Positions 16,339 to 62,545 of a stretch of DNA of 64,000 nt are shown here, piece after piece (positions within the stretch are counted from its first letter, which is position 1; each line of letters begins with the position of its first letter). The translations under genes were made by a program, and so were the position numbers. The notes below the pieces were generated by a model. It was given only the letters and a program-made list of their open reading frames with translations, did not search any database and had not been told where the DNA came from. The DNA lies in NCBI RefSeq assembly GCF_006345805.1, contig NC_043010.1:46996001-47060000 (forward strand), in the 5' to 3' direction. This DNA is from Octopus sinensis (lineage: Eukaryota).

Positions 16339-16949
16339 TAATATATATAAAATTTGGGGGGTGGGGTAGAGTAAATGAACAATTCTAAATTTCAGCCTAG
16401 CCTTCTGAAAAAAAATTTCATCAAAAATAAATCGGAATCATTTTTTTCTTCTTATTTTGTAATCAAATTATACTTCCGCAACAGATATTACTTTTAATAG
16501 GGAAGAAATAAAATACAATATTTGGAATTAGATAATGGATAGTGACACTAATATAAAAAACTCTTAAAACGTGACAAAAGCTTTGAACAATCGGTTTTCC
16601 CCACACAACCTTACGTATATTTTACCTAATGCTCTATGAATGTTATAAAATATAAGAAGAAAAAAAAGATATGGAAAGCGAATAGATGGATAATAGAACC
16701 AAAGAATTAATTGCTAAAATTCAAACAAAAAATATTTAATTTAAAAGGTTTAAGATACGTTGGAATTAGGTTTTCCTTCTGTAAAAAATGAAGTTTCAAT
16801 ACATCTTGTTAGTATCAGTATAGCAGTTTTCAAGCAAGGGATACATTATCGAGTTGAAATAAACTTTAAAAAGGGAAACTTCGAAGAACAATGTATGAAT
16901 GCACATATAATACAGCATAACATAACATAATATAATATAATATATAATA

Positions 16950-17677
16950 TATATATATTCTCGTTAATGTATATTGTCATAAGAAATAATGGTTTTCTGC
17001 AAGATGAAAATCAAGATTAAACAAAACAAAACAAAAATAAACAAGAGAATATTTTATTGACTATCAGCAAGCACGTGTTAAAAGGGCTTACGACGTCGCG
17101 TGTTGAACATTTTACGTTGAAATATACAAATATATACAGAGAGACGAATTACTTCAATTGAATCGTTAACATTATGGTAATTATACGGTGCAATTAAGCA
17201 GAAGTGTAATATATCTAATTAAATCAATATTCTGATCTGAAGATAAATATTCAAAGGAATATAGCGATTCAATCTAAAAATGAATGAGAGGAGACGGAAA
17301 AGTTAATCTATATTCAAAAATTAAGCTTGTCCCCCCTGCCCTCGCTTTGACAGTTATTAAATACATGTAGAGCTAACATCTTTTAATTACGAAACTAATA
17401 CCGCATAAAACCGTAACTTTCAGACTTGTCAAAAAACGAGGATATTCTCAAGTAATTGAGAGAATTTAATATTTATGTTTTGAATTTGAACTGTCGTTGA
17501 TTGACAATTCATCTGTCTATATGGTCACGTTGGTGAACGTATTGTCATTTGTGAACTTCGGAGGTGGTACAGAATACAAGTGTGAACTCTAATGGCGGTC
17601 GTCATAGAGTCGGCTGCCGTTCAATTATCTTCGACTCTCAATAGTTTGCCTAAAATCCTGCCTTTTGCCTGAAGAAT
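16950..17677 (+). promoter_or_regulatory. Putative promoter and 5' UTR of the FBXW7 gene
   Basis: Repeat-free, CpG-enriched stretch directly upstream of the ORF; in-frame stop at 17651-17653 makes ATG 17678 the first in-frame start. TSS not determined. Confidence 0.45.
17592..17672 (+). other. Upstream ORF, 26 codons (MAVVIESAAVQLSSTLNSLPKILPFA)
   Basis: ATG at 17592 (aATGG), TGA at 17670-17672; ends 5 nt before the main ATG and in a different frame. Confidence 0.4.
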
Positions 17678-20380
17678 ATGGTAGGAAGAAAGAAAAACAC
17701 CACTGGGGCAACTGAGAAGAAAATAGATGTTAATCTGGCATGCGTGGAGGAGTTAACTTCGCTTGATAGGATCGGTCCGAGAAGAGCAGAGAGTATTGTG
17801 GAGGCTCGGAAGCGTTTAGGAGGATTCAGTTGTGTCGATGATTTGTGTAAAGTTAACGGCATCACTACTGAATGGCTTGAATCGAACAAATCCAGTCTAG
17901 GTTGTGTACCTTACAGTGTGAAGTCTCCACGGCGACCCAGACAATCTACGGTGAACAACAGTAACGAAGTAAGTGATGCTAAAGAAGAACATCAGTGTAT
18001 AGAGACTTCCTCTTCTTCTTCTCTTTCTTCTTCTTCTACTGTTTGCACTACTTCATCTTTTACTTGTGCATCTGTACCTAATACAAGTTCTTCGAATAAT
18101 ACTTGTTTTAGTTCTCCATCTACATCGTCACTATCATCTACTTGTACTATTACTACTACCTCTCCACCGGCGACAACTACTATTCCAACATCATACGCCA
18201 TCAATTTTAAATGGGACCCTTCTACAAGCAAGAATAGGTCCTCCTCCACCTCAAGTGGCCTTCGTGTAAATCGTTCAAGTGAGAATCTGTGTAATTTGGA
18301 ATGTTCTGAAGGTGCTAGTAGTGTAACCAGTACTGCGACCAGTTCTACCTCTGACCAAGACCGGCAGATTTTGGTGGTCAATGAAGACGCTTCTGAAAAT
18401 CCTCCAGCTGCTGAAGATAAAATGACTGTCCAAGTATCCCAGAAGGTAACAACTAATGATATTATTCAAGCCGATTCGGATAATTGGACTAACAATAACC
18501 CCCCTGATAAATCCGAAGCCTGCTCTGCATCAGCTAATGAGGTGGGCAAAGGAGAAGGTGGGGAATGTGAAACTAATGATGGTCAGAGTAATGATCGGAA
18601 TGGCTCAGGAGGAAGTTTAGAGAACAGTTGCAGCGATGGTAATTCTGGACTAGGGTCATCATTGGTCTCCTCTATTAGTCCACATCAAAGTTTATTTTCT
18701 AGCCCTCCACTGAAATCTCGTATTCCAGTGCCTATTCATCAACACAAGGATAAATATATAATGAAAAGAAAGCAAGACATTGGTTGGCAAGAAGAGGAAG
18801 AAACAACACCAGGAAAAAAATTCTGTCGTTCTTCAGCAGAACTCTTTAATTCTGATACTTTGCGCTCTCATAACCTGTCAACTTTAAACATGGGTTTTAC
18901 TAGAAAAAAAATTCCATCAAAAAGCAACCCCCCTCCAGAACTTGCTCAATGGTTACAGACATTCCAGTCCTGGAGTAACCCTGAGCGATGCTTAGCTTTA
19001 GATGAGATGATAGAACTTTGTGAACCCACCCAGGTCAGACATATCATGCAGGTTATTGAGCCTCAGTTCCAAAGGGATTTCATTTCATTGCTTCCAAAGG
19101 AATTGGCATTGTATGTTCTATCCTATCTTGGACCAAAGGATCTTCTCCGTGCAGCGCAGACTTGTCGTTACTGGCGTGTTCTTACCGAGGATAATTTACT
19201 TTGGCGGGAAAAATGTAACGAAGAAGGAATTGATGAATCTTTAGTATTTGGATATAGTGTAAGACGACGATCTCAGGGTATGTTGAGAAGTCCCTGGAAA
19301 ACTCTTTACATGCGACAACATCAGATCGAACAGTATTGGAGATGTGGTAAAATTCGTCCACCAAAACTCCTCAAAGGTCATGAGGATCATGTGATAACCT
19401 GTTTAGAATTTTGTGGTAGCAGAATTGTGAGTGGGTCTGATGATAACACACTAAAAGTTTGGTCATCATTGACTGGGAAATGTTTACGAACACTTATTGG
19501 TCATACTGGTGGTGTGTGGGCATCACAGATGGCTGACAATATCATTATTAGTGGATCTACAGACCGAACACTCAAAGTTTGGAATGCAGAGACTGGCCAG
19601 TGTATTCATACTTTATATGGTCACACATCAACAGTGCGTTGTATGCACTTGCATGAGAATAAAGTTGTGAGTGGTTCGAGAGATGCTACACTTCGAGTAT
19701 GGGACATTGATACTGGTCAGTGCCTGCATGTTTTGATGGGGCATGTTGCAGCAGTTCGTTGTGTTCAATATGATGGGCGACGGGTGGTCAGTGGAGCCTA
19801 TGACTACACGGTTAAAGTGTGGGATCCAGAGACTGAAGCCTGTCTCCACTCTCTGCAAGGACACACTAACAGGGTGTACTCACTACAATTTGATGGTACA
19901 CACATAGTTAGTGGCTCTTTGGATACGTCAATCCGTGTCTGGGATGTTGAGACAGGCACCTGCCTACATACGCTCATTGGTCACCAGTCGCTGACTAGTG
20001 GTATGGAACTGAAAGAGAATATACTTGTTTCAGGCAATGCTGATTCCACTGTTAAAGTTTGGGACATTCGCACTGGTCGTTGCCTTCAGACACTTCAGGG
20101 TCCGAACAGACACCAGAGTGCTGTCACATGCTTGCAGTTTAACAAGAAATTTGTGATAACTTCATCAGATGATGGAACTGTAAAAATCTGGGACTTAAAG
20201 ACTGGTGAGTTTCTACGGAATTTAGTGACACTAGAGAGTGGTGGAAGTGGTGGAGTTGTATGGCGGGTACGCTGCACCAACACCAAACTTATATGTGCTG
20301 TTGGCAGTCGGAATGGTACAGAAGAAACAAAATTAATGGTATTAGATTTTGATGTTGATGATCGGAAGCAACCTGTCTAA
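17678..20380 (+). CDS. FBXW7: F-box/WD40 protein FBXW7 (Archipelago/SEL-10/Cdc4 family), single-exon ORF, with N-terminal ComEA-like double helix-hairpin-helix domain
   Basis: 900-aa uninterrupted ORF. MKRKQD at aa 362 matches the vertebrate common-region start MKRKLD. D-domain WLQTFQSWSNPERCLALDEMIELCEPTQVRH and F-box DFISLLPKELALYVLSYL...LLWREKC are present. WD40 repeats end in GSRNGTEETKLMVLDFD, nearly identical to the FBXW7 C-terminus. R654, R668 and R694 correspond to human R465, R479 and R505. Residues 15-74 are HhH-like. Confidence 0.96.
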   Translation: MVGRKKNTTGATEKKIDVNLACVEELTSLDRIGPRRAESIVEARKRLGGFSCVDDLCKVNGITTEWLESNKSSLGCVPYSVKSPRRPRQSTVNNSNEVSDAKEEHQCIETSSSSSLSSSSTVCTTSSFTCASVPNTSSSNNTCFSSPSTSSLSSTCTITTTSPPATTTIPTSYAINFKWDPSTSKNRSSSTSSGLRVNRSSENLCNLECSEGASSVTSTATSSTSDQDRQILVVNEDASENPPAAEDKMTVQVSQKVTTNDIIQADSDNWTNNNPPDKSEACSASANEVGKGEGGECETNDGQSNDRNGSGGSLENSCSDGNSGLGSSLVSSISPHQSLFSSPPLKSRIPVPIHQHKDKYIMKRKQDIGWQEEEETTPGKKFCRSSAELFNSDTLRSHNLSTLNMGFTRKKIPSKSNPPPELAQWLQTFQSWSNPERCLALDEMIELCEPTQVRHIMQVIEPQFQRDFISLLPKELALYVLSYLGPKDLLRAAQTCRYWRVLTEDNLLWREKCNEEGIDESLVFGYSVRRRSQGMLRSPWKTLYMRQHQIEQYWRCGKIRPPKLLKGHEDHVITCLEFCGSRIVSGSDDNTLKVWSSLTGKCLRTLIGHTGGVWASQMADNIIISGSTDRTLKVWNAETGQCIHTLYGHTSTVRCMHLHENKVVSGSRDATLRVWDIDTGQCLHVLMGHVAAVRCVQYDGRRVVSGAYDYTVKVWDPETEACLHSLQGHTNRVYSLQFDGTHIVSGSLDTSIRVWDVETGTCLHTLIGHQSLTSGMELKENILVSGNADSTVKVWDIRTGRCLQTLQGPNRHQSAVTCLQFNKKFVITSSDDGTVKIWDLKTGEFLRNLVTLESGGSGGVVWRVRCTNTKLICAVGSRNGTEETKLMVLDFDVDDRKQPV

Positions 20381-20622
20381 AAACATAATATATATGTATA
20401 TATAGCATTAAATTATATATATATATATGTATAAGTAACATTATATATATATATATATATATATACATACACATACCTGCTCTTATATATACATAGGTAT
20501 ACATGCATACATCTATATAAACAGGTGTATGATTATATATGTATACATATATACACATATATATACATATACATATATTTATACATACATATATATATAC
20601 ATATATATACATATATATACAC

Positions 20623-20661
<39 letters not shown>

Positions 20662-21381
20662 AAGTGTGTGTGTGTGCACATTGATGTTTACATAAATGTA
20701 ATGTATGCACATATATGTATACTTGCATATATATATAGAGATAGATATACACGTGTATATATATATATACATACACACATACGTGTATGTATATACACGT
20801 GTATGTATGTGTCTATATATATATGCATGAGTACATGTGTACAAGCTTATATATATGTGCATGTATGTATATACATGCTCACATTCTGTGTATATGTATA
20901 CATGTGCATATGTAAATAGATAAATGTACACTTATATATATGTGCATATATATATAATTATATACACACACACACACACATCCATGCACACATTCTTCAA
21001 GCAAAATACTAGAGTCAAATGCAACATCATCTCCTATTCTTTCTATCTTTCCTTAATTCCAGAACATTTTGCTTTTTTTTTTTCTGAAAACTTTCTTCTA
21101 CATATTTTCATGTCTTTTCTTTCTATTTATTTATTGATTGATTTTTTTTTTTTTTTCCTTTTGTTGAGGAAAATGTTCTTCTCCCTTCCCTGCCCCACCC
21201 ACCCCATTTTTGGCCGCACTGATTTAGGTTTCATTTATTGGGCTTTGTCCTTACATTTAAAGCATCTAATTAGAGCAGAACGTATCTCTTAGGGCAAGCA
21301 AACAACAAAAATATTAAGAGATCAAGAAATATATATATATATATCTTTTTCTTTACTAGCTTCAGCTCGAGATCTGTGACC

Positions 21382-21448
<67 letters not shown>

Positions 21449-22095
21449 GTGTGTGTGTACCGTCGTTCTGATAATTTCTGTATTCTTTACATGTAATTCT
21501 CACCCACCCGCTTTTTTCTTTTCTCAAGCCTCCACCCCAAAAAAGGGAGAGGGAGTTTTATTACATTTTGTCACTCCATCACCGCTCTTTATTCTTCTCC
21601 TTTATTTTCTTTATTAATTTTTCACATTTATTTATTGATGATGAAGAAAAGAGAAGGGAAAAATATTACTCTTTTTTTTGTTGTTGTTGTTTCTTTCTTT
21701 CTCTCTTGTTTCCTTGGTCTTTCTCCTTCTTTTTTACCTCATCGCTAATCTCTCTCTCTCTCTCTGACAACCCTCCTTCCGGATCTGTTAGCATAAAAAC
21801 AGAAAACATTCACACATCCACCTTGTCACTAAAATAACTCAATTCACCACACCTTTAAGGCTTATTACCTTAGGTTACCCACCCGTTAGTGAATGCTTCG
21901 TATCTTTTTCATATTTTTTTTCCCATTTTCATTTAGTGTTTTTTTTTTTCAAATTCTTTTTTCATACTAATTTCTAGTTCATTTTAGAATAATTTCCTGC
22001 CGTTTTTCTTTCTATCTATACACGTATGCATCAATCTATGTGTGTGTTTTGTGTTAACGTCGGATAGCTTCCTTATATGTATACCCGTGTGAGTA

Positions 22096-58299: not shown

Positions 58300-58589
58300 T
58301 CTCCCCTTTTGAGATTTAACTTCTGTAGGAAGTGCAACTTGTTTATTTAATTTTATTGTTTTTTTTTTTTCATCATCACCTCTTCTCTTTCTGAGATTTT
58401 AATTTCCTCAGAAATTTTAATACTTCTTTCACTTAGGGACTATTTCTAGTCATTCTGTGTCCTTACACTGTGAACAATATTTACCGTCACTTAAATGTGG
58501 ATGTTCTGTTGGAACAAACTTTAATAATAATAATAATAATTGTATACAGTGCTCAGGTGCACTACAACTCATCTAAAGTGTATATATAA

Positions 58590-61416
58590 TCAGGTGTAGT
58601 TTCGGCGGATTTCGGAAAGCATGAGGGCCTTAAAGGATGCAGTGTCATGGCAGTCAACAACTGACGCAGGCAGTTTATTCTATGCTTCAGCAACTCTGAG
58701 CGTGAAAAAATGTTTCCGAAAGTCATGGGAGCTGTGTTATTTTCTGACTTTGTAGGCATGTCCATGTGTGTTAGACACATGGAGATCAAAAGGTGTTCAG
58801 TGTTGTTGTTGGTGAGGTGGTTGATAACCTTGTGGGTGTTTACCAAGTCCGTCGCCAGACGCCGGAGCTTCAGTGAATCCATGCCCAGGGAAAAAGGGCG
58901 CTCAGAATATGGTAGGTGTCTGATGGAGGGTATGCGTTTGGTTGCACGTCTCTGGACAGATTCCAGGAGGTCAATGTTCTGAGCAAGATAGGGATTCCAA
59001 ACTGATGATGCGAATTCCAAGTGTGGTTGTACCATAGCTGTATACAGTTTTAAATAGATGGCTGGAGAGCGGCTAACAAAAGTCTTGCTGAGTGATGCCA
59101 AGACACCCTCGGCTTTCTTGACAATTTTAGAGATATGCTTTGTCCAACGCAAATCTCTGCTGACAGTGATGCCTAGGTCACGCTCGCAAGAGGATTTCTT
59201 GATATCAGTGTTGTGGAGGGAGTATGTGGACGCAGGGTTTTTTCTCCCAAAATGCATGGTGGTACACTTGTCCACAGCCAGTTTCAGTTGCCAGTCTGTG
59301 ATCCATTGCTGCATTGTGTCTAGGTCTGATTGCAGGAAAGAGTTGTAGACATCAGGATCAGTCCTCTTGATTTCAAGGTACAGCTTGATGTCGTCTGCAT
59401 ATTTCAATACTGTGGCATTCTTTAAATTGGCATCTATGTCATTAATGTATGCCACAACAGGAGGGGACCAAGGACAGATCCCTGTGGTACACCCGATGAC
59501 ATCTCATATGGTGTAGAGTGCTGTCCTAGAACTGTGACTACCTCCTTTCGGCTGAGGATGAAGGATTTCAACCAGTTTAAAAGGTCATCCCCCACACCCA
59601 TTGCAGAGAGTTTCACCATAAGCCTTTTGTGTGGCACAGAGTTGAAAGCCTTAGCAAAGTCAAGGTAGACAACATCCACCCATGAGCCACTGTCAGTGAT
59701 CTGAGTAATGTCCTCAAGGAACTCGACAAGCTGGTCACTGCAGCTGGAGTTAGGGACAAATCCATATTGTGAGGGTCGGATGAGACTGTGAGAGCTCCAG
59801 AAGTTCCAGGGTTTCTCTGACACACGATTCCATCAGTTTTGCAATACAGCTAGTGAGACTGACTGGGCGATAGTTGACAGGTGATATGCGGTCACCCTTT
59901 TTGAATAGAGGAATGACACTGGCAGTTTTCCACTGCTCCGGAGTAGCACCATTGTTGAGACAGTACTGGAAGAAAATAGAAAGCTGGTGTAAAAGGAAGT
60001 GCCTGCCACGTTTGAGAAGCAGGTATGTAACTCCATCGAGACCAGGGGAGGCATAGTTGCGCTTATTTTGAAGGTGACGTCGCAGCATTGCAGGTGTAAA
60101 TTCCATAGTTGTTATGGAGTTTGCTGTTAGTGATGGTGAAGATGGTACATTTTGACTTTCAACAGTGAATATGTTTGCATAGCACTCGGCAATGAGTTCT
60201 GCGCATTCCTTGGGGTCGTCAGTGATCTGGTTTGTGTGAGGGTTGCGAAGAGGGCCCACTGGAGAGTGAGGTCTCTGCTTTGAATGCATATATTTCCAGA
60301 AAACCTTGCTGTCAGGATTGGCTGCTATGCACTGTTCAAATTCAAGCACTGCTTTTTTGTCACTTGCTTGAGATGGTTGGAGGATTTATTCCGCTTCTTC
60401 CTGTTGGTGTCTGATTTATGCAACTTGTATTCCTGTTCAGCAGTCCGACGTTCCTTCCTGGCAAGTCGGACCGCTGAAGTTTCCCAAATTGCCCTTTTGG
60501 GGCGGTTCTTCTTTTTTTGTTTACGTGGCACTGATGCTGCACATGCTGCCCATATTGAGTCCAGGATACTCTGGAGTATAGTATTCACATCTCCAGAGTT
60601 GTAGAATTCACGCCAGTTTGGGTGCTGTAGTTCAGTGTGGTACAGGTTCCAATCTGCTCTCTTCCAATCGAAGGAAGCAGATTGGAGATGGTTCAGGTGT
60701 TTGTTGCCCGCAAGAGCCAGATTGGCGATGATCATAGCATGATCAGAGTCACCTAGAGGTTCCTCCGTAGTGCAATTGATAACCGCTTCAGGAGTTGTGG
60801 TGAAGAGCAGGTCCAAGGTGTTGTCGCCTCTTGTTGGAGAGGTGACTACTTGTGACCAGTTTGAGTCCAGCACAAGCTCAACAAAATCGTTTGCACTCTG
60901 TGGCCAATGGAAGGTTTCCCAATCGATCTCAGGATGATTGAAATCGCCTGCAATAAACACATAAGTGGCTGTTTTCCTGGCAGCAGCTCGGAGGATGTTG
61001 CAAAGCTGTGTGTCCTGATGGTAATTTGGAGGACGATAAACAACGCCAAGCAGGAGTGTTGACATGGTCATATGTACGTCACAGAAAAAAACTTCTTCTT
61101 GTGATTCGTTCAAATCGGCACAAGGAATTACCAAAAAATTTGAACGAACGTAGACCATCACACCACCACCACGGCGGTTAGTGCGGTCCTTACGGAAGAG
61201 GTTGTACCCCGTGATGTTGAAAACCCCATCACAGAGTAAGGAATGCGCCCATGTTTCCGTGACAGTGATGAAGTCAGGGTCAATACTTCTGACATAGGCG
61301 TTGAACAAATGTATTTTGTTGCATAAACTGCGAGCATTTAAGGACAACAATTTGTACCCTGCTTGCAGTTTATGATGGTGTGTAGAGGATGGCAGGTTGT
61401 CCTGGCTTAGTTTCCC
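58590..61416 (-). pseudogene. CR1 ORF2: APE endonuclease plus reverse transcriptase, frameshifted
   Basis: APE motifs NARSL, ITETW, GDFNHP, LDL and SDH; RT motifs YRPVSLTS, YLDFAKAF, GVPQGSVLGP and YADD. Frameshifts at about 60355, 59810, 59456 and 58790; TAG at 58680-58682; natural stop at 58590-58592. Confidence 0.92.
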
Positions 61417-62102
61417 TGAGTTGCTGTAGTCTTTTTAGTTATTGTGGGTAGAGAGCACTCAGACCAGCTGGTATCTCTCTTCCACGTTTCATCAGTCTTG
61501 ACAAATCTCCAGATTTGTCCATCTTCCCGAAGACTGAAGCTTTCCTGTAGAGCTGAGTTCCTATTCAGGGAAGCCGCTACACGTAGCTTCGGACGTACAT
61601 CGGACGGTAAGCCTGGGCGTGTTCGGAAGGTGATCCGATTTTCACGCCCAGCTTTAACTGAGGCCAGATGGTAAGAGGTTGCCTCAGTGTGGTCCGAAAA
61701 AGACAGCTTGATGAGCCTAGGTTTTGGGCCAGGTCGTCCAAGGTGGATAGCACCCGTTGGGGGAACGCAGCCTAGGTCTTTGGCTGAGTTGGCAGCAAAT
61801 GCCTGAAGATCAGCCATGTCTTCTGGCACCCCAATGGCAATGACTTCATGGGTAGCAGAATCCGCGGTCTTAGATGCGACAAGAGGTACAGGTACAGGGA
61901 GGTCCTTTAGCAGAGCATTCCGATAAGACCCCTCATTGTGGAGTCCAACCTGAATGGTTGCTTTTATTCCTGCTACTTCCCCTCTTAAAGCACAGATCGA
62001 TTGTTGCAGTTCTGCAAGAACCGCACTGGTCAATTGGTGTTGTTGTTGTTGCTGCTGTTGTTGTTGATGTTGTTGTTGCTGCTGCTCTGGTTGTGGTTGA
62101 TT

Positions 62103-62134
<32 letters not shown>

Positions 62135-62337
62135 CTGGTTGTGGTTGATTTTGTTGTTGCTGCTGTTGTTGTTGTTGCTGCTGCTGCTGCTCTAGTTGTG
62201 GTTGATTTTGTTGATGCTGCTGTTGCTGTTCCGCCTCCTCCACGGGAGTGGCAGGGGGAGACACAATCGTCGGTTGTGGAGGCACGCAGGCCTGACACTG
62301 AAAAGTCCAAGATTTAAGCTGAACCATCTTCCAGAGT
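61407..62337 (-). CDS. CR1 ORF1 (truncated): PHD C-terminal remnant, polyQ tract, coiled coil, RRM-like region
   Basis: WTFQCQAC; Q-rich repeats; LAELQQSICALRGEVAGIK; SYRNALL; VIAIGVPED...LGRPGPKPRLIKLSF. The track's MRVSLISTA start derives from flanking host sequence. Confidence 0.75.
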
Positions 62338-62545
62338 CTTGCAGTAGATATGAGAGAAACTCTCATACTGGCTTTTTATCTTCCTGCTAGCGATATAAAC
62401 AAGAGTGCATTTTGCACAAAATGCTAATATGAGAGTCTCTCTCATGGTATCTACTTCAGTATAGTCTGTTCTAATAGAACATCCACGTTTAAGTGGGGAT
62501 ACATATTACCTCTTGGTATTAATATTGCCTCTGTTGCTAATATAT

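Follow-up and report, generated by a model that had tools for sequence, protein, structure and literature searches.

FBXW7 of Octopus sinensis carries an N-terminal ComEA-type helix-hairpin-helix domain that appears to be an old and widespread animal fusion

FBXW7, among the best-studied tumour-suppressor ligase adaptors, governs the turnover of Myc, Notch, cyclin E, Jun and further regulators, and the place at which the ligase acts is set by its variable N-terminus. In other families, ligase receptors placed on DNA or chromatin are established: KDM2A and KDM2B combine a CXXC domain with an F-box, FBH1 (FBXO18) combines an F-box with a UvrD helicase, and DDB2 serves CRL4 on damaged DNA. These proteins use other DNA-binding folds and belong to other receptor families than the protein described here; none of them is an FBXW7 and none contains a helix-hairpin-helix (HhH) domain. 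F-box proteins with UvrD-helicase and YccV DNA-binding domains have also been listed (PMC4556705). The subject of this report is an FBXW7 gene of Octopus sinensis with a double HhH domain at the N-terminus of its product, found in a stretch of 64,000 nucleotides (NCBI RefSeq assembly GCF_006345805.1, contig NC_043010.1, positions 46,996,001 to 47,060,000 of the forward strand), referred to below as the window. All coordinates are positions in the window, on the forward (+) strand unless stated otherwise.

In bacterial ComEA the domain is a double HhH of atypical form, which lacks a connector helix and contacts DNA phosphates mainly through backbone amides (PMC9747964). Its best-conserved residue, K164 of ComEA-Bs (K63 in V. 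cholerae), touches DNA in the model, and the substitutions K164A and K199A in ComEA-Bs each cut transformation more than 100-fold (more than 2 logs for K164A) (PMC9747964). The octopus protein is predicted to have the same connector-helix-free double HhH as the ComEA structures 8dss, 8dfk and 2duy and keeps a basic residue equivalent to K164. ComEA itself, however, is a small periplasmic protein, either secreted or anchored in the membrane, which oligomerises and draws DNA inwards, whereas the octopus domain fronts a 900-aa ligase adaptor of nuclear type; the octopus protein is not a ComEA, and the domain type alone is common to both. Among animal proteins, KIF22/Kid (2edu) uses a ComEA-like HhH to tether a catalytic machine to DNA: the tail with the HhH motifs is needed for kinesin-driven transport of double-stranded DNA (dsDNA), not of single-stranded DNA, and deletion of the tail abolishes dsDNA transport (PMC13581288). 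The HhH of KIF22 is C-terminal on a kinesin motor and that of the octopus protein N-terminal on an F-box protein; KIF22 appears to be the best functional analogy for the octopus domain. EEPD1 (9yi2), the best-scoring solved sequence relative of the octopus module, also has non-canonical hairpins. It joins two HhH domains to an endonuclease/exonuclease/phosphatase fold and has no ubiquitin-ligase part.

The octopus gene is a complete single-exon coding sequence (CDS) at 17678..20380, with an ATG start and 900 codons plus stop, and it is by a wide margin the longest open reading frame (ORF) in the list compiled for the window. The gene range equals the CDS length in the assemblies of both O. sinensis (GCA_006345805.1) and O. 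vulgaris (GCA_951406725.2), which encode the same protein; at the O. sinensis locus (L001) every base agrees with the window. The 90% cluster of this protein contains a partial Argonauta protein and RefSeq XP_014786183.1, 'F-box/WD repeat-containing protein 7 [Octopus bimaculoides]', so that the gene is already annotated as FBXW7. The top PDB sequences are human FBXW7 chains (7t1y_B, 2ovp_B and 5v4b_B, E ~1e-268), with a bit score of 896 for FBXW7 against 266 for beta-TrCP/FBXW1A and 230 for Cdc4. The alignment is near-gapless, octopus aa 451-894 corresponding to human FBXW7 263-706, and in both full-length and profile searches every one of the top database matches is named FBXW7 or FBXW7-like. 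Taken at the level of sequence, these comparisons identify the ORF as the FBXW7 orthologue, the substrate receptor of an SCF (SKP1-CUL1-F-box) ubiquitin ligase, and all defining features of the group that can be read from a protein sequence are present in it. Between O. sinensis and O. vulgaris, 2 of the 2,703 coding positions differ, both synonymously and with zero amino-acid changes. The corresponding figures are 5 of 1,000 positions upstream and roughly 1-4% in the surrounding 20 kb, and the synonymous sites of the CDS look unusually conserved at this short distance (compared over 16678-20380).

The extreme N-terminus is a ComEA/HHH_3-type double HhH that spans aa 13-76 (17714..17905) and reaches up to an invariant cysteine, Cys76. 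The first-pass annotation, made from the letters alone, had proposed a ComEA/HHH_3 pattern at aa 15-74, and both its coordinates (17720-17899) and its assignment proved accurate. When the first 100 residues were scanned alone, Pfam HHH_3 (PF12836) matched aa 13-73 over profile positions 3-63 of 65 (E=2e-14), and its 53.8 bits exceed the gathering threshold of 27; the N-terminus also matches HHH_5, HHH and HHH_6, more weakly than HHH_3. An AlphaFold2 (AF2) model built with a 13-sequence alignment reaches a predicted local distance difference test (pLDDT) score of ~90 over aa 21-70 and places helices at 23-27, 33-47, 53-58 and 64-70, together with a small beta-bridge in which the IDVN strand pairs with the L-G-C strand that holds Cys76. 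The best PDB match found with Foldseek is Geobacillus stearothermophilus ComEA (8dss_B; root-mean-square deviation 1.0 A over 63 columns, 38% identity), followed by the C-terminal domain of human KIF22 (2edu; 46% identity over 52 columns) and the Thermus ComEA-related protein 2duy (TM-score 0.86 normalised to target), with PsbU, Tex and TEFM lower down. When relatives of solved structure are ranked by sequence profile instead, EEPD1 (3e-25) comes first, ahead of ComEA (1e-17 and 2e-16) and KIF22 (1e-10). HhH motif 1 (LDRIGPRRAESIV, 17762..17800) has the hairpin R31-I32-G33 and motif 2 (LCKVNGITTEWLE, 17843..17881) the hairpin G61-I62-T63; in the model the two motifs are joined by a loop without a connector helix, which corresponds to the atypical ComEA fold.

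Thirteen HhH modules from FBXW7 and FBXW7-like proteins of different phyla were aligned, and D17, N19, A21, L29, G33, A37, I40, R44, F50, G61 and C76 are invariant in all of them. Cys76 (17903-17905) lies just past the end of Pfam HHH_3, in an 'L-x-C' context, in 13/13. Conservation in relatives, which the first-pass annotation had named as a check, is also apparent at the codon level. Synonymous sites are saturated between the octopus gene and two decapodiform-like loci, L003 (a 43.8-kb genomic contig encoding 872 aa) and L007, with synonymous divergence (pS) of 0.68-0.83. The nonsynonymous divergence (pN) between octopus and the decapodiforms is lowest in the F-box/WD40 core (0.02), reaches 0.07 in the HhH (pS 0.82) and rises to 0.34-0.37 in the linker. 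Omega values for the pair L003 and L007 follow the same order, with 0.009 for the core, 0.043 for the HhH and 0.49 for the linker. The HhH is thus, as judged from these divergences, under strong purifying selection. In the oyster, 91 Logan contigs of 2-5 kb correspond to HhH-FBXW7, one of which (L005, 2,982 nt) carries a complete spliced ORF of 752 aa with HhH, F-box and WD40 repeats; these contigs are transcripts, since the ORF is spliced while the genome copy has introns. The selection pattern and the oyster transcripts indicate that the HhH is neither 5' untranslated region (5'UTR) nor decaying sequence. The Logan contig L007 was also considered as transcript evidence and dropped: it is colinear with the genomic L003 over 5.3 kb, and in a gene without introns it is unable to tell RNA from DNA.

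The ligase part of the octopus protein is that of human FBXW7, yeast Cdc4, fly Archipelago and worm SEL-10, with an orthologous dimerisation (D) domain region, F-box and WD40 propeller. The F-box (aa 469-514, 19082..19219) matches F-box-like PF12937 (E=1.9e-16; score 60 bits, cut-off 24.3), aligns with the human FBXW7 F-box (7t1y_B) and is, by this match, of the SKP1-binding type. It is followed by the WD40 beta-propeller (aa 555-894, 19340..20359), in which Pfam finds seven WD40 repeats and which aligns with 7t1y_B and 2ovp_B. The phosphodegron-binding arginines R654 (19637-19639), R668 (19679-19681) and R694 (19757-19759) align with human FBXW7 R465, R479 and R505 in the PDB sequences. One stop-free ORF with a complete FBXW7 core and these three arginines had been read in the first-pass annotation, and the human alignment supports that reading. 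Directly upstream of the F-box, as in the FBXW7 group, the sequence points to a D domain (aa 409-468, 18902..19081). The region at aa 418-468 has many invariant columns over the 13 phylum-wide proteins, including W425, L426, F429, W432, D442 and C448, and agrees with the gibbon FBXW7 sequence LQEWLKMFQSWSGPEKLLALDELI...; the full-length AF2 model is helical at aa 420-470, and the pN of aa 409-468 is 0.07.

The HhH and the D domain are separated by a Ser/Thr-rich linker (aa 77-400, 17906..18877; 31% Ser+Thr) that is predicted to be disordered, the AF2 model having pLDDT <50 and no secondary structure over aa 81-415. The full-length model thus runs from a folded HhH (aa 13-80) through the unstructured aa 81-415 to the helical D-domain/F-box region and the propeller, and the modelled architecture is that of a small folded head on a flexible tether of ~335 residues. 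Within the linker, the motif MKRK (aa 362-365, 18761..18772) is invariant in the 13-sequence full-length alignment, and gibbon FBXW7 has KMKRKLD. We regard MKRK as a candidate for the nuclear localisation signal in the common region of FBXW7 proteins. As a motif shared in that region it is more likely to be the nuclear signal than the N-terminal GRKK and PRRPR. Mammalian FBXW7, with its alpha, beta and gamma isoforms, likewise has a variable N-terminus upstream of an MKRK-bearing common region; compared with canonical vertebrate FBXW7, what distinguishes the octopus protein is that its N-terminus is a folded HHH_3 domain, and the cephalopod gene differs in having a single coding exon.

The first-pass annotation had presented the fusion as special to this lineage, and this claim fails. 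The taxonomic breadth was established from full-length and profile searches with precomputed Pfam lists, over the best 120 matches, and because such lists include faint matches, N-termini were re-scanned with hmmscan. HHH_3 was found at the N-terminus in 13/13 FBXW7 or FBXW7-like proteins (best E 2e-18) from taxa that span Mollusca, Annelida, Nemertea, Brachiopoda, Hemichordata, Cephalochordata and Vertebrata, and additionally, at 53 bits, in the FBXW7-like N-termini of a sawshark and an electric ray. PF12836 is flagged on FBXW7 of bivalves (Sinanodonta, Magallana, Mercenaria, Mya, Mactra, Dreissena), gastropods (Haliotis, Aplysia, Biomphalaria, Physella, Elysia, Patella, Gigantopelta), the chiton Liolophura, the annelid Owenia, the nemertean Lineus, the brachiopod Lingula, the hemichordate Glandiceps and amphioxus, and on vertebrate 'FBXW7-like' proteins of sharks and rays, lungfish, amphibians, turtles, squamates and birds. 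All these proteins have the same domain order with the HhH at the extreme N-terminus, and the octopus protein is their cephalopod member. It differs from the others in its hairpins, R-I-G and G-I-T in cephalopods against mostly G-I/V-G, and the others have an intron within the HhH. The fusion already stands in RefSeq and UniProt under the name FBXW7; its broad annotation removes the novelty of the fusion and not its existence. No HHH_3 match was found in a profile scan of the canonical FBXW7 N-termini of gibbon, turtle and guppy, which agrees with the first-pass view that human FBXW7 has no such domain, and there is no mammalian FBXW7-like protein among the matches listed. The fly, worm and yeast homologues are not known to carry an HhH domain.

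Some lophotrochozoan gene models depart from this pattern. Isoform X2 of Tubulanus (P0034) begins at the intron inside the HhH and has the second half of the domain only (15.5 bits), and the FBXW7 model of Babylonia (P0083) has an unrelated N-terminus. This suggests that alternative first exons may give isoforms with half an HhH or none in lophotrochozoans outside cephalopods. Searches started from the HhH itself were of limited use for breadth: HMMER with an HhH profile against 1.84 billion representatives returned 75,538 matches at E<=1e-3, flooded by proteins with 3-18 tandem HhH, among which FBXW7 was not distinguishable, and an HhH-only profile in a word-indexed search retrieved short proteins alone (38-114 aa), mostly bacterial ComEA, and not the long FBXW7. 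In the literature searched, no description of an HhH-bearing FBXW7 was found, and the variant seems to be undescribed in print though visible in sequence databases. The 'Fbxw7-like' genes reported from Xenopus are only moderately similar, Xenopus-specific and without HhH among their listed domains (PMC4556705).

The gene structures argue for a single ancient origin of the fusion. Three loci were compared with the octopus gene: L003 5690-8308 (decapodiform-like), L004 3001-9377 (oyster, gene span 6.4 kb) and L006 10001-45996 (painted turtle FBXW7-like, gene span 36 kb). In both oyster and turtle an intron lies within the HhH at octopus-equivalent codon 45, right after an invariant Arg, and further intron positions common to both lie at or near octopus-equivalent codons 475, 601, ~663 and ~807. 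The same HhH-internal intron in oyster and turtle indicates that the fusion is older than the protostome-deuterostome split. A neighbour-joining tree built from 561 ungapped columns recovers FBXW7 of vertebrates (bootstrap 94) and FBXW7-like (100) as sister clades; both fall within a vertebrate clade (94) that excludes amphioxus and the hemichordate. In the simplest history, the bilaterian FBXW7 gene would have had HhH-coding 5' exons; a duplication in vertebrates would then have produced an FBXW7 copy that lost these exons and an FBXW7-like copy that kept them. In the turtle, FBXW7-like is flanked by RRP8 on one side and by a dynein heavy-chain gene on the other (L006 3261-55996). As FBXW7-like adjoins RRP8, many bird models are misnamed 'ribosomal RNA-processing protein 8 isoform X', and many bird RefSeq models fuse the two genes (P0039, P0045, P0054, P0391-P0406). 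In the swift, the HhH exon is annotated apart, as 'uncharacterized protein HI_1008-like, partial' (P0121).

What sets the cephalopod gene apart is that its coding sequence has lost every intron, and nothing else about it is lineage-specific. The CDS is a single uninterrupted range in both octopus assemblies and in the decapodiform-like L003, and every intron common to oyster and turtle is missing from it. The absence of every intron speaks for retroposition of an HhH-containing mRNA, or else for cDNA-mediated gene conversion, at a time before octopuses and decapodiforms parted, and the cephalopod FBXW7 looks retrogene-like. No poly(A) remnant is recognisable in the 3' flank, which is a TA/CA microsatellite; marks of a retrogene would be erased, given that the event is older than the octopus-decapodiform split. 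With a single coding exon, alternative first exons cannot swap the cephalopod N-terminus.

The explanation that we favour, with moderate confidence, is that the octopus gene is an FBXW7 orthologue with an ancient HhH fusion in which the HhH serves as a DNA or chromatin localisation module. The domain would act in the manner of the isoform-specific N-terminal exons of mammalian FBXW7. It would concentrate the dimeric ligase on chromatin, where the phosphorylated transcription-factor substrates sit, and the long flexible linker would let the propeller reach substrates bound there. That the HhH binds the dsDNA backbone without sequence specificity, and so tethers the protein to DNA or chromatin, is a proposition towards which the sequence comparisons incline us slightly. 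Octopus R36 (codon 17783-17785) aligns with K164 of ComEA-Bs and K63 of V. cholerae (8dfk alignment, chain numbering offset 56), and the equivalent position is K or R in 13/13 HhH-FBXW7 sequences. Octopus K71 aligns with K199 of ComEA-Bs and is basic in 8 of 10 invertebrate sequences. The N-terminal 100 residues, with their basic flanks, have an isoelectric point (pI) of 9.0.

Several points weigh against this explanation, or narrow what it may cover. As the first-pass annotation had noted, both octopus hairpins (R-I-G at aa 31-33 and G-I-T at aa 61-63) fail the G-h-G signature, with one Gly retained in each. Hairpin 1 is G-I/V-G in 10 of the 13 HhH-FBXW7 modules and hairpin 2 likewise in most invertebrates, while hairpin 2 of vertebrate FBXW7-like proteins is G-I-T, as in octopus; human EEPD1 hairpins also depart from the signature (G-V-T, G-L-S, G-I-N). 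Such departures weaken, without removing, the expectation that the hairpins would contact DNA through backbone amides. The HhH core is slightly acidic (pI 5.3), although ComEA cores are likewise acidic (pI ~5.0-5.3). The net charge of the core was rejected as a test of DNA binding, being non-discriminating when proven ComEA cores are equally acidic. PsbU of photosystem II, one of the Foldseek matches, has a ComEA-like fold in a non-DNA role, and the HhH of Pasteurella ComE1 is reported to bind fibronectin besides DNA. As regards age, the proposal that the fusion is ancestral to Bilateria draws on lophotrochozoans and deuterostomes: no HhH-FBXW7 of Cnidaria, Porifera, Ecdysozoa (arthropods, nematodes), Echinodermata or teleosts is among the best 120 matches, which is not evidence of absence. 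As regards cephalopods, no second octopus FBXW7 appears among the top matches of the protein searches, and it is from this that the HhH form is probably the sole FBXW7 form there.

The same observations lend themselves to another explanation, namely that the HhH is real and conserved but acts as a protein-protein or RNA-binding module, which docks a partner, substrate or regulator, or regulates the ligase, and tethers nothing to DNA. The fold matches include Tex and TEFM, known from RNA and transcription contexts, beside PsbU, and the reported fibronectin binding of ComE1 and the deviating hairpins fit this explanation as well. The invariant Cys76 and the extra beta-bridge, neither of them in the Pfam model, suggest a family-specific surface. 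However, the closest solved sequence relatives (EEPD1, ComEA and KIF22) are DNA binders or presumed ones, the key DNA-contact lysine position of ComEA is basic throughout the family, most orthologues have canonical G-I/V-G hairpins, and basic tails flank the domain; we therefore regard a role away from DNA as unlikely, if a serious contender. The origin of the module is a separate matter, since entry into an early animal FBXW7 by horizontal transfer of a bacterial comEA-like gene would be compatible with any function. Against the profile of the animal module, bacterial and archaeal ComEA proteins, which are 40-50% identical to the octopus domain, reach 70-80 bits, at least as much as animal KIF22 (44 bits) and EEPD1 domain 1 (53 bits). 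But the HHH_3 family is very large and counts further old members among eukaryotes (EEPD1, KIF22, TEFM, Spt6/Tex), and a domain of 64 residues carries little phylogenetic signal; we consider such a transfer improbable.

Two further explanations concern the octopus gene itself. An artefact of the gene model, with 5'UTR or a neighbouring gene read in frame as HhH, or a dead processed retrocopy, might be suspected from a CDS without introns where orthologues have at least 7-12 coding exons, and from the remnant of a retrotransposon with endonuclease and reverse-transcriptase domains in the same window. Against this, O. sinensis, O. vulgaris and O. bimaculoides all have the 900-aa ORF unbroken, decapodiform-like species have an intact equivalent of 869-872 aa, and the start Met is retained. 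Purifying selection acts on all segments, the HhH among them, while synonymous sites are saturated, and the searches brought up no other octopus FBXW7 among the top matches; an artefact or a dead copy is very improbable. The view that the fusion arose within cephalopods or molluscs, and gave them a new DNA-tethered SCF receptor, could appeal to the canonical vertebrate N-termini without an HHH_3 match, and to the human, fly, worm and yeast homologues, which are not known to carry such a domain. It is refuted by HHH_3 on FBXW7 or FBXW7-like proteins in seven phyla including vertebrates, and by the HhH-internal intron position common to oyster and turtle, and can practically be discarded.

Upstream of the gene, a 29-nt non-coding block, CTAATGGCGGTCGTCATAGAGTCGGCTGC (17589..17617, 60-90 nt upstream of the ATG), hardly varies from octopus to the decapodiform-like L003 and L007 despite the saturated synonymous sites, and is a candidate core-promoter or 5'UTR element. 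Its ATGGCGG core presumably resembles a YY1 site. A 5'UTR intron ending at a polypyrimidine-AG (…cctgccttttgcctgaag|aatATG) was considered and rejected, the splice-acceptor-like ctgaag before the ATG not being conserved in the decapodiform-like loci. A scan of the upstream region for sigma-70 promoters and terminators gave nothing above shuffles, with bacterial models that are not applicable to a eukaryote. Right after the stop codon, dense TA/CA/TATG microsatellite occupies 20390-21000 and 21380-21450 and gives rise to long spurious ORFs rich in Tyr, Ile and His on both strands. Farther away, on the minus strand at 58562-62366, lies a degraded retrotransposon without long terminal repeats (non-LTR, LINE-type), with broken ORFs for endonuclease/exonuclease/phosphatase and reverse-transcriptase domains.

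The octopus gene is an ordinary annotated orthologue that points to an ancient and little-studied variant of an important ligase. As a tentative view, to which we give somewhat less than even credence, FBXW7 ancestrally carried a chromatin-tethering HhH that went unnoticed because mammals, flies, worms and yeast lack it; the domain would persist in most lophotrochozoans, in amphioxus and in the vertebrate FBXW7-like proteins, and would have been fixed by a retrogene as the sole form in cephalopods. If the HhH binds DNA, then many animals, among them chicken, reptiles, amphibians and sharks through FBXW7-like, would have a chromatin-tethered form of this ligase that stays out of view in work on mammals, flies, worms and yeast.

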